Assembly: GCA_964057225.1 (NCBI GenBank) | Contig: OZ059898.1 | Location: 13,392,001 to 13,456,000, forward strand | Source of the DNA: Auanema rhodensis | Taxonomy: Eukaryota; Animalia; Nematoda | DNA: 64,000 nt | Direction: 5' to 3' | Shown here: positions 19,246 to 21,590 of the stretch, in pieces | Layout of the letters: the number at the start of each line of letters is the position of its first letter | How positions within the stretch are numbered: the stretch's first letter is position 1 | Position numbers and translations under genes: made by a program | Notes under the pieces: model-generated | Told to the model about the DNA's origin: nothing | The model's input: only the letters and a program-made list of their open reading frames with translations | Databases searched by the model: none

Positions 19246-21590
19246 TTAGTTTTTTAGTGACTTCATGATTTCGTGCGCAGCATTTAGAGTATTATCAGTC
19301 TGAAACAAAATATCTCCATCAGTAATTAGGCTCGTATCTCGATGGATTTTGCAAAACAAGTTCATGTTTGCAAAACACTTTCAGCTTGAATCAAAAGTTT
19401 TGAGAAAAGTGTACCTTCATAAAGCAGACACGAACTAAACTATTGTTTTTCGACTCATGATCAGCAGAGAGGAACGCTGATGGTGGAATCGTAGCTAATT
19501 TCTAAATAGAAGAATAATTACAATGTCACAACTAAAGAAAACTCACTTTTTCCCTGGCAAGCCAACGAACAAAACGGAAGTCAAGTGGGTCATCCCCAGG
19601 TTTTTCCTCCCGGAAAGGACCATCTAAAACAGGAATTGGTATGCTGATATACAATAACAACAAGTGCAAACCGAAGTTTCCGAAATCAGCAAGCATGAAA
19701 TATCCCGATTGTGGAACAATAGGACGAAGGCCAGCTTCGCGCAACATTACAGAAAGTTTGTCCCTTTTAGTTAGAAGCTCATTGGGTAGTTTAGAAAGCA
19801 AGTAGGAATCCTCCGGATTTGTTTTGAAAATAGACATTCTAAAACAATTCGAAAAAGCTTGATGTCCAATAAGTTTTTAAAGTTTACTCTTTTTCAAAAG
19901 CCTGTGCTACAGCCTCTTGTGTTGGGGTACTACAGGTGAACACACAATTCTGGTGTACCATCTGAAAAAATATTTTTATTATTTATTGAAATATTTATAA
20001 CGGAACCTTGATAGGCTTTAATAAATGATCTGGACCAATAGCCCATCCCAACTTCCAACCTGTGATGGAGAAAGCTTTTCCAGCACTTCCAATAGAAATT
20101 GTTCTTTCGAACATTCCAGGGAGACTTGCTGAACAGTTAAAAGACGTTATTTCCTAATTTTCCAGAAGAGAACTAACCCATTCGAATCATTTTCTCACCA
20201 CCAAACACATGCCACTCGTAAACTTCATCAGCAACAACAATTAAGTTTTTTCTCTTAGCAAAATCGGCAATTTGCTCCAATTCTTTTCTAGAGAATAACT
20301 TTCCTGTTGGATTATTAGGATTGTTGAGTACAAGCATCTGAAAAAAAAACGAAATAATGATATTCATATTCATTCAGATTTACCTTGGTTTTATGAGTGC
20401 ATTTGGCTTCCATCAAATCCATGTCTAGGGTGTAATCTGAAGCGTTTTGAGCTCCTTCTTTCAGGTTCATAACAACAGGAACCGGAACACCACCAGCCAT
20501 AAGAACTTGTGGAGCATAGCAATCATAAGTTGGCTCAATTACTAGAATATGTATATATTGAACAATGTGCACATAGTTTGCATTCGATCTCTCTTATTCA
20601 CAAATATAAATGTTAGACATATGCCCCCCCACCTACTACTCACTTAATACTTCATCATCTTGGTCAACCCAACCCATAAATGTTTCATATAGTCCAAGAT
20701 CAGCACCAACGGTTATTAATATCTAAAAAAAAAAATTACTCACATAAAACTTCATCGCCGTGATTGATCCAGCCCAGGAATGTATAATATAAAGCTAAAT
20801 AAGCTCCAACAGTTACGAGAACCTAAATGAATACAAAATTGAATTGAACTAGTCAACTCTAATGTATTACCTCATTAGTAGCGTTGACTTCTCTACCATA
20901 GAGATCTCCATACAGCTTGGATAAAGCATTCACTAAACGAGGATGACCAAAACCTGTAAAATGGGATTATAAAATGTAATCTGCAATACTACAAGAAATA
21001 AATAAGATTTAAATTCCTCAATTTAATATTGAGAAAGCCGTCGAATAAACCCTCATTTAACAAAATAGTATAGTGAAAAACGGTTACAATCTTTTTCTCA
21101 GAAATTATATTGAACGCTTTTCTAATTAAATACACGAATTCTTTAATTTTTCATAAATCACCTCTAGTATATTGATGCCAATCAGTCCTTTCAGGATGAT
21201 CGGAAATTTCCTTCAGCAGATCCGATACGAACTTAGGCATAGGTCCATCAGGGAAGCCCTAGCAATTAATGATTATTCCCTACATACTTACAAGAGTAAG
21301 ATCTACCTGCCCTAAGTTCACGGACTTTGTTTCTGCTGCAAGGGCGGTGAATTCAACCCTTTAATAGTTTGATAATACTACAACTCTAATCACACTAACC
21401 ATATCGAAGGCTTAGCATCTGCAACTCGATCGGCACATCTTAAACCAGGTAGAGTAGACATCATACGTTTGGCGAAAGGAACTACTTGAGCGTTTCTGCC
21501 GAAAATCAATGAAGTCATTTCTCTTACCCTTGATAAGATCGAGCTTCGCCTGGAGCTGACCCTGATCAATAATTTATCAACAATTTTCAT
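19246..21590 (-). CDS. nkat-3: Kynurenine--oxoglutarate transaminase (KAT I/III-type class I PLP aminotransferase), multi-exon with a duplicated exon pair
   Basis: Motifs KPSIWVEFT, VNLGQGFPD, HQYTRGFGHPRLV, NNPNNPTGK, ADEVYE, the PLP-lysine motif IGSAGKAFSITGWKLGW, and VRVCFMK. TAA at 19246-19248. Arg/Ser-rich N-terminus with several in-frame ATGs, so the start is uncertain. nkat-3 versus nkat-1 orthology is tentative. Confidence 0.9.
20644..20722 (-). CDS. Aminotransferase alternative exon B (79 nt)
   Basis: TTTTAG|ILITVGADLGLYETFMGWVDQDDEVL+A|GTGAGT. Phase 0 in, phase 1 out. Confidence 0.85.
20744..20822 (-). CDS. Aminotransferase alternative exon A (79 nt)
   Basis: TTTAG|VLVTVGAYLALYYTFLGWINHGDEVL+T|GTGAGT. 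Phase 0 in, phase 1 out. Confidence 0.9.

Follow-up and report, generated by a model that had tools for sequence, protein, structure and literature searches.

A tandem pair of homologous, apparently mutually exclusive exons covering the substrate gate of a nematode kynurenine aminotransferase

How many enzymes can a nematode derive from a single kynurenine aminotransferase (KAT) gene? The question is raised by a locus of Auanema rhodensis located in the window that we analysed, a stretch of 64,000 nucleotides of contig OZ059898.1, where the fifth exon of such a gene is followed, after a very short spacer, by a diverged copy of itself. A first-pass annotation, made from the sequence alone, had proposed that these are two paralogous exons of 79 nt, identical at 16 of 26 residues, sharing the same phase and set 21 nt apart, and that by choosing between them one gene makes two enzymes of different substrate preference. 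Sequence and translations bear out the first part of this proposal. The second part calls for a more nuanced answer: the architecture of the locus, the nature of the residue exchanged at the gate of the active site and the constraint acting on the coding sequence all speak in its favour, while no splice junction of the second copy came out of the RNA, the case for a second enzyme being one of evolutionary inference.

The gene is of the KAT I/III type (glutamine transaminase K). An exon-by-exon check of borders and phase places its ATG at 21518 and its TAA at 19248-19246, and the frame closes at the expected number of codons only when exactly one of the two copies of exon 5 is present (Table 1). 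The aminotransferase domain PF00155 (Aminotran_1_2), present in all the full-length KAT orthologues that we retrieved, is recognized in exon 7 with a score of 54.4 bits (the cut-off being 19.7), and exon 8 scores 18.4 bits. Exon 8 aligns with residues 231-269 of human KAT I (1W7L/3FVS), so that the lysine of its SAGK motif, residue 17 of the exon, falls on Lys247, the PLP-binding lysine of the human enzyme. Human KAT I, or KYAT1 (1W7L, 3FVS), and the mosquito KAT (1YIY) are the best matches of exons 5A, 5B and 8 among solved structures, joined by KAT III in the case of exons 5A and 8; Tyr101 and Lys247 both align. The names given to the orthologues, in nematodes and in other animals, are kynurenine-oxoglutarate transaminase or Nkat-3. 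Transamination of kynurenine, glutamine and aromatic amino acids is the activity of the family, and it is the activity predicted here. A search of the A. rhodensis genome (181 Mb, 112 contigs) revealed this single KAT gene, and the closest full-length relative that we found is that of Auanema sp. JU1783, with 77.6% identity summed over exons.

KAT is flanked by a 14-3-3 gene and a Tim10-type gene, and the same order is found in Auanema sp. JU1783 and in Pristionchus mayeri. Within positions 18700-23000 of the window, 14-3-3, KAT and Tim10 follow one another on one strand, separated by short gaps. Upstream of the KAT ATG, RNA contigs continue for more than 500 nt and enter the 3'UTR of the 14-3-3 gene, and in gene models of Setaria and Trichinella KAT is fused with a Tim10 domain. 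The whole arrangement looks like a conserved operon. The 14-3-3 gene located upstream (about 22021-23000, minus strand) has a tandem homologous exon pair of its own, with a spacer of 26 nt (22405-22430, minus strand) that begins with a GC donor (gcgagt...ttacag), a layout identical to that of KAT exons 5A and 5B, 1.6 kb away.

Table 1. Features of the KAT locus (positions within the window) and uninterrupted KAT reading frames of three relatives (positions within their own loci)
Feature	Position	Strand	Remarks
KAT gene, KAT I/III-type (glutamine transaminase K)	19246..21518	minus	13 coding exons, 442 codons with one exon 5 copy; GT-AG borders
Exon 4, common upstream exon	20871..20953	minus	ends in phase 0; joint 20871>20822 in four RNA runs
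Exon 5A, 79 nt, canonical TVGAY	20744..20822	minus	VLVTVGAYLALYYTFLGWINHGDEVL; preceded by tcatttag, followed by gtgagtaa
Spacer, 21 nt	20723..20743	minus	gtgagtaatttttttttttag; A donor GTGAGTAA (gtgagtaa), 11 T, B acceptor AG
Exon 5B, 79 nt, diverged paralogue, TVGAD	20644..20722	minus	ILITVGADLGLYETFMGWVDQDDEVL; preceded by tttttttttttag, followed by gtgagtag
Intron from exon 5B to exon 6, 102 nt	20542..20643	minus	lies within the 202-nt intron that is spliced out in the A isoform
Exon 6, common downstream exon	20384..20541	minus	starts TA-ATT-GAG-CCA
Uninterrupted KAT ORF, Mesorhabditis spiculigera	L005:1501-2757		
Uninterrupted KAT ORF, Necator americanus	L008:1501-2817		
Uninterrupted KAT ORF, Cylicocyclus nassatus	L010:1001-2257		

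Exons 5A and 5B (A and B in what follows) both begin in phase 0 and end with one base to spare; together with the TA at the start of exon 6 (20541), this base gives a leucine codon after A and an isoleucine codon after B. The first-pass annotation had placed this next exon at about 20542: the exon is there, and its start is at 20541. At the nucleotide level the two copies are identical at 52 of 78 positions, and a tblastn search of 3 kb of the gene with exon A as the query retrieves B with E = 3.7e-9, a value that sets their homology apart from chance resemblance; this search against the 3 kb displayed no third copy of exon 5. What happens when the copies are not used one at a time can be read directly from the sequence. 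If the spacer is retained between A and B, the reading frame runs into TGT GAG TAA, a stop; if exon 4 is joined straight to exon 6, a TAA comes immediately. It had indeed been claimed that inclusion of both exons or of neither disrupts the frame. Since the length of 79 nt is of the form 3n+1 and double inclusion as well as skipping end in stops, the enzyme is encoded only when a single copy is included.

Could the spacer be excised, joining A to B? The spliced introns of the KAT gene range from 41 to 208 nt, and in Caenorhabditis elegans introns of less than about 40 nt are not excised (PMC4165533, Kuroyanagi et al. 2014). With the minimum length of a spliceable intron judged from these two sources, the introns of this very gene and the C. 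elegans limit, a spacer of 21 nt, about half the length of the shortest intron seen spliced (41 nt), lies below what the splicing machinery would remove. It would not be excisable as an intron, and A and B would not be joined, in keeping with the view that they lie too close to be spliced together. B has intact splice sites, a U11-AG acceptor and a GTGAGT donor. The architecture of a mutually exclusive pair, sterically enforced, is supported. The 102-nt intron that comes after exon B is about twice as long as the usual introns of the gene (41-49 nt); it has a G-rich start, gtgagtagtaggtggggggg, and contains a CTAAC, the G-rich run and the CTAAC being possible regulatory elements.

Pairs of this type have precedents. 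In C. elegans, exons 5B/5A of egl-15, separated by a spacer of 14 nt, and exons 9/10 of let-2, separated by 30 nt, are proven cases, and further clusters of the same type are found in bet-2, gly-5 and gly-6 (PMC4165533). The egl-15 and let-2 pairs and the KAT pair are alike in that they consist of tandem homologous exons of equal length, with a spacer below about 40 nt (PMC4165533). They differ in two ways. In the five C. elegans clusters the length of the exons is a multiple of three, whereas the KAT exons are of the form 3n+1, the ensuing stops acting as a second safeguard; and use of both exons has been proven in the C. elegans pairs, whereas in KAT splicing has been seen for A only. KAT does not belong to the 27 genes of the C. 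elegans survey, the text of which mentions neither 'aminotransferase' nor 'nkat' (PMC4165533), and our search of the literature found no paper linking mutually exclusive exons with a KAT enzyme, nor any alternative exon for this segment. The A/B pair in KAT appears to be new, the mechanism and the enzyme family being both already known.

Which of the two exons is seen in RNA? Assembled contigs from four runs (X1 to X4) of one study were placed on positions 19200-21600. The share of matching words, 0.43-0.52 in the four runs, fits that of spliced RNA, the higher share of X1 resulting from about 200 nt of extra retained sequence, and the joints of the contigs confirm every constitutive intron of the gene (41-49, 115 and 208 nt). 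Exon 4 is joined to A (20871>20822) in all four runs, and A to exon 6 (20744>20541), skipping the 202 nt that include B, in three of them; each of these three (X2, X3 and X4) displays one full-length contig, which reads exon 4, A and exon 6. This shows that bulk RNA uses A by default. The junctions by which B was expected to reveal itself, 20871>20722 and 20644>20541, are found in none of the contigs of these four runs from one study; contigs lose rare variants, dropping rare isoforms, so that the missing B junction is to be taken as absence of evidence, not as evidence of absence.

B is transcribed, and in X1 it is present within an unspliced or slowly spliced form: one contig is unspliced over 20384-20735, covering exon 6, the intron, B and part of the spacer, with all other introns removed, and a second contig (20725-20820) goes from the spacer into A. 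It would be scarcely credible to see in the A/B pair an artefact of assembly, whether from a wrong join between haplotypes or from the collapse of a duplicate: of the 78 nucleotides compared, 26 differ between A and B, far beyond what separates alleles, and the X1 contigs match 20384-20735, without any difference, as well as 20725-20820. On these two counts the artefact was rejected. As a further observation, X1 is the only one of the four samples that keeps the interval from exon A to exon 6 unspliced, and the breaks between contigs fall at the T11 run, of which a variant of low depth carries an additional T.

These X1 contigs, unspliced from exon 6 through B to the spacer and from the spacer to A while other introns are spliced, might also be accounted for if B were mainly a regulatory 'poison' region, where competition over the spacer would yield messages with a premature stop, then degraded, thus tuning the output of KAT. 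The stop at TGT GAG TAA, met by unspliced messages and by those carrying A, spacer and B, would fit this role. However, the X1 pattern may be that of ordinary pre-mRNA, depth within contigs is not comparable, and a purely regulatory role would leave unexplained that the amino acids of B have been preserved against a background of saturated synonymous change, as discussed below. We find this explanation quite improbable.

Exploration of relatives tells how widespread B is. Approximately 150 KAT homologues were retrieved, using exon 10 as a query and two full-length searches, and they provided 145 distinct exon-5 segments. No B-like segment is present among these 145, all the homologue proteins being of the A type. 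A second exon copy is likewise absent from the KAT loci of seven relatives, the nearest being Auanema sp. JU1783, where a plain 48-nt intron follows the 79-nt exon, and the other six Mesorhabditis spiculigera, Diploscapter pachys, Pristionchus mayeri, Necator americanus, Caenorhabditis bovis and Cylicocyclus nassatus. The search for exon B in other nematodes, which had been put forward as a check on the proposal, thus went against it, and B is lineage-specific among the species sampled. Along a different line, KAT is a single uninterrupted open reading frame in M. spiculigera, N. americanus and C. nassatus (Table 1), and the two strongylid frames adjoin a DnaJ gene, outside of the 14-3-3/Tim10 neighbourhood. 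This looks like the replacement of the gene by a retrogene.

What does the choice of exon change in the protein? A gapless alignment pairs exon A with residues 94-119 of human KAT I (1W7L), which makes the Tyr8 of A the counterpart of Tyr101, as the first-pass annotation had it; exon B matches these residues in the mosquito KAT. Exon A is identical to the segment of Auanema sp. JU1783 at 23 of 25 residues. Its TVGAY becomes TVGAD in B, and the further acidic changes that had been noticed (Y>E, N>D and G>D) are present as claimed. There are ten replacements in total. Four of them create an aspartate or a glutamate, which would occur under neutral mutation with a probability of about 0.017 (this being a post hoc test), and the net charge goes from -2 in A to -6 in B. 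Compared with the 145 distinct segments, the residues of B fit those of natural KATs at 23 of 26 positions, while D8, E13 and D22 are seen in none of them. Position 8 is a tyrosine in 136 of the 145 segments, none of the KATs retrieved having an aspartate there, and position 22 is a glycine in all 145.

Position 8 is that of a known gate residue. In human KAT I, Tyr101 is a mobile gatekeeper whose swinging movement opens the pocket and which bonds through its hydroxyl to Asp126; changes of this residue alter the kinetics of the enzyme, often with activity kept (PMC12808825; PMC6400995). Mutants Y101H, Y101F and Y101N of human KYAT1 are active with shifted substrate kinetics, indicating that the position tunes specificity, and Y101Q has lost transamination of one substrate (PMC12808825). 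To be sure, this is not quite the situation of exon B, as Y101D is not among the KYAT1 mutants (PMC12808825) and as B alters nine other residues too. Counting on from the alignment of exon A, a Tyr-Asp in exon 6 would correspond to Phe125-Asp126 of the human enzyme. With the equivalent of Asp126 kept in exon 6 and Asp8 contributed by B, the B isoform would have two carboxylates at its gate. A changed substrate preference of this isoform is plausible; that it would prefer basic substrates, as had been suggested, is a guess drawn from its charge. In the class Ib aspartate aminotransferase of Thermus thermophilus, Lys109 binds the distal carboxylate of the substrate, and this lysine, the residue that comes after the TVGG motif, occupies what we take to be the structural position of Tyr101. 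It would be a precedent for a charge at this place setting the preference for side chains, although the Thermus enzyme belongs to a different subfamily and the charge is opposite to that of the aspartate of B; a literature search on Thermus Lys109 retrieved nothing.

Has B been maintained by selection? Following Nei-Gojobori, A and B are separated by 13 synonymous differences over 17.8 sites (pS 0.73) and 13 non-synonymous differences over 60.2 sites (pN 0.22), to be compared with 13 over 18.0 (pS 0.72) and 3 over 60.0 (pN 0.05) between A and its counterpart in Auanema sp. JU1783. Synonymous sites are saturated in both comparisons, and the duplication must therefore be old. Despite this saturation, B has kept an open frame, 62% of its residues and both its splice sites. 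We simulated a situation where B drifts neutrally and A changes only synonymously: given 24-28 nucleotide differences, the probability of retaining at least 16 identical residues out of 26 without any stop is about 0.01-0.02, a test that rests on 26 codons and that speaks to past selection, not to present use. It looks as if B has been kept as a coding exon, and its pattern of changes would fit directed divergence better than random decay.

The main competitor of this interpretation considers B as the relic of a tandem duplication, once used or never, and now just a part of the 202-nt intron, with U1 bound to the A donor permanently masking the B acceptor 21 nt away. Several features are in line with it: the contigs of the four runs of one study display A junctions only, no relative that we examined has B, the residues of B at three conserved positions, including the invariant Gly22, are foreign to the family, and when compared with Auanema sp. 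JU1783 the pN of B (0.205) is four times that of A (0.05). Loss of this glycine could be early damage, the start of a decay. Against it, B has retained 16 of 26 residues, its frame and both splice sites while synonymous sites became saturated, the neutral probability being the low one just quoted, and seven of the ten replacements are conservative or within the variation of the family. We hold this explanation to be doubtful, though it weighs more than the regulatory one; a recent death of B after a long functional life is possible.

Taking all this together, we are inclined, with some reserve, to see in exons A and B a mutually exclusive pair that is specific to this lineage and enforced sterically, in which B would supply a minor or restricted isoform. 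The scenario would be as follows. Exon 5 of the single KAT gene would have been duplicated in tandem long ago, in the lineage of the species itself. Within the spacer, U1, bound to the A donor, would compete for adjoining bases with U2AF/U2, bound to the U11-AG of B; when the B acceptor wins, exon 4 would be joined to B over a 148-nt intron containing A, and the unspliced form found in X1 may be an intermediate or a by-product of this competition. B, as a minor or cell-restricted alternative, would rebuild the strand-loop-helix in which the PLP-phosphate loop and the mobile gate residue are located, and its aspartate at the Tyr101 site, together with three more acidic residues, would create an altered, more negative substrate gate. 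Because enzymes of this family are dimeric, mixed dimers of A and B would be possible. We would go further only with great caution: that splicing of B is confined to certain cells or conditions, that its acidic entrance shifts the enzyme to cationic or otherwise different amino- or keto-acid substrates, and that a single KAT gene thereby obtains by exon choice two enzyme specificities, where Caenorhabditis has paralogues, makes up a scenario that, taken as a whole, we deem improbable.

KAT makes kynurenic acid, a compound that in C. elegans links feeding state to learning, and there nkat-1 and nkat-3, which belong to the same enzyme family in another nematode, are involved in its synthesis in neurons (PMC5828390, PMC7397858). 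Caenorhabditis has at least two KAT paralogues, with several entries in C. briggsae and C. remanei, whereas A. rhodensis has one gene, in which the choice of an exon may take the place of gene duplication as a way to diversify KAT. If B is never used, the locus would provide a clean setting in which to estimate for what length of time an unused exon retains its frame behind a sterically dominant donor. If B is in use, the locus would amount to a natural experiment on the Tyr101 gate, now mutated by protein engineers (PMC12808825), and we would witness a metabolic enzyme diversified by a young, lineage-specific duplication of an exon rather than of a gene.
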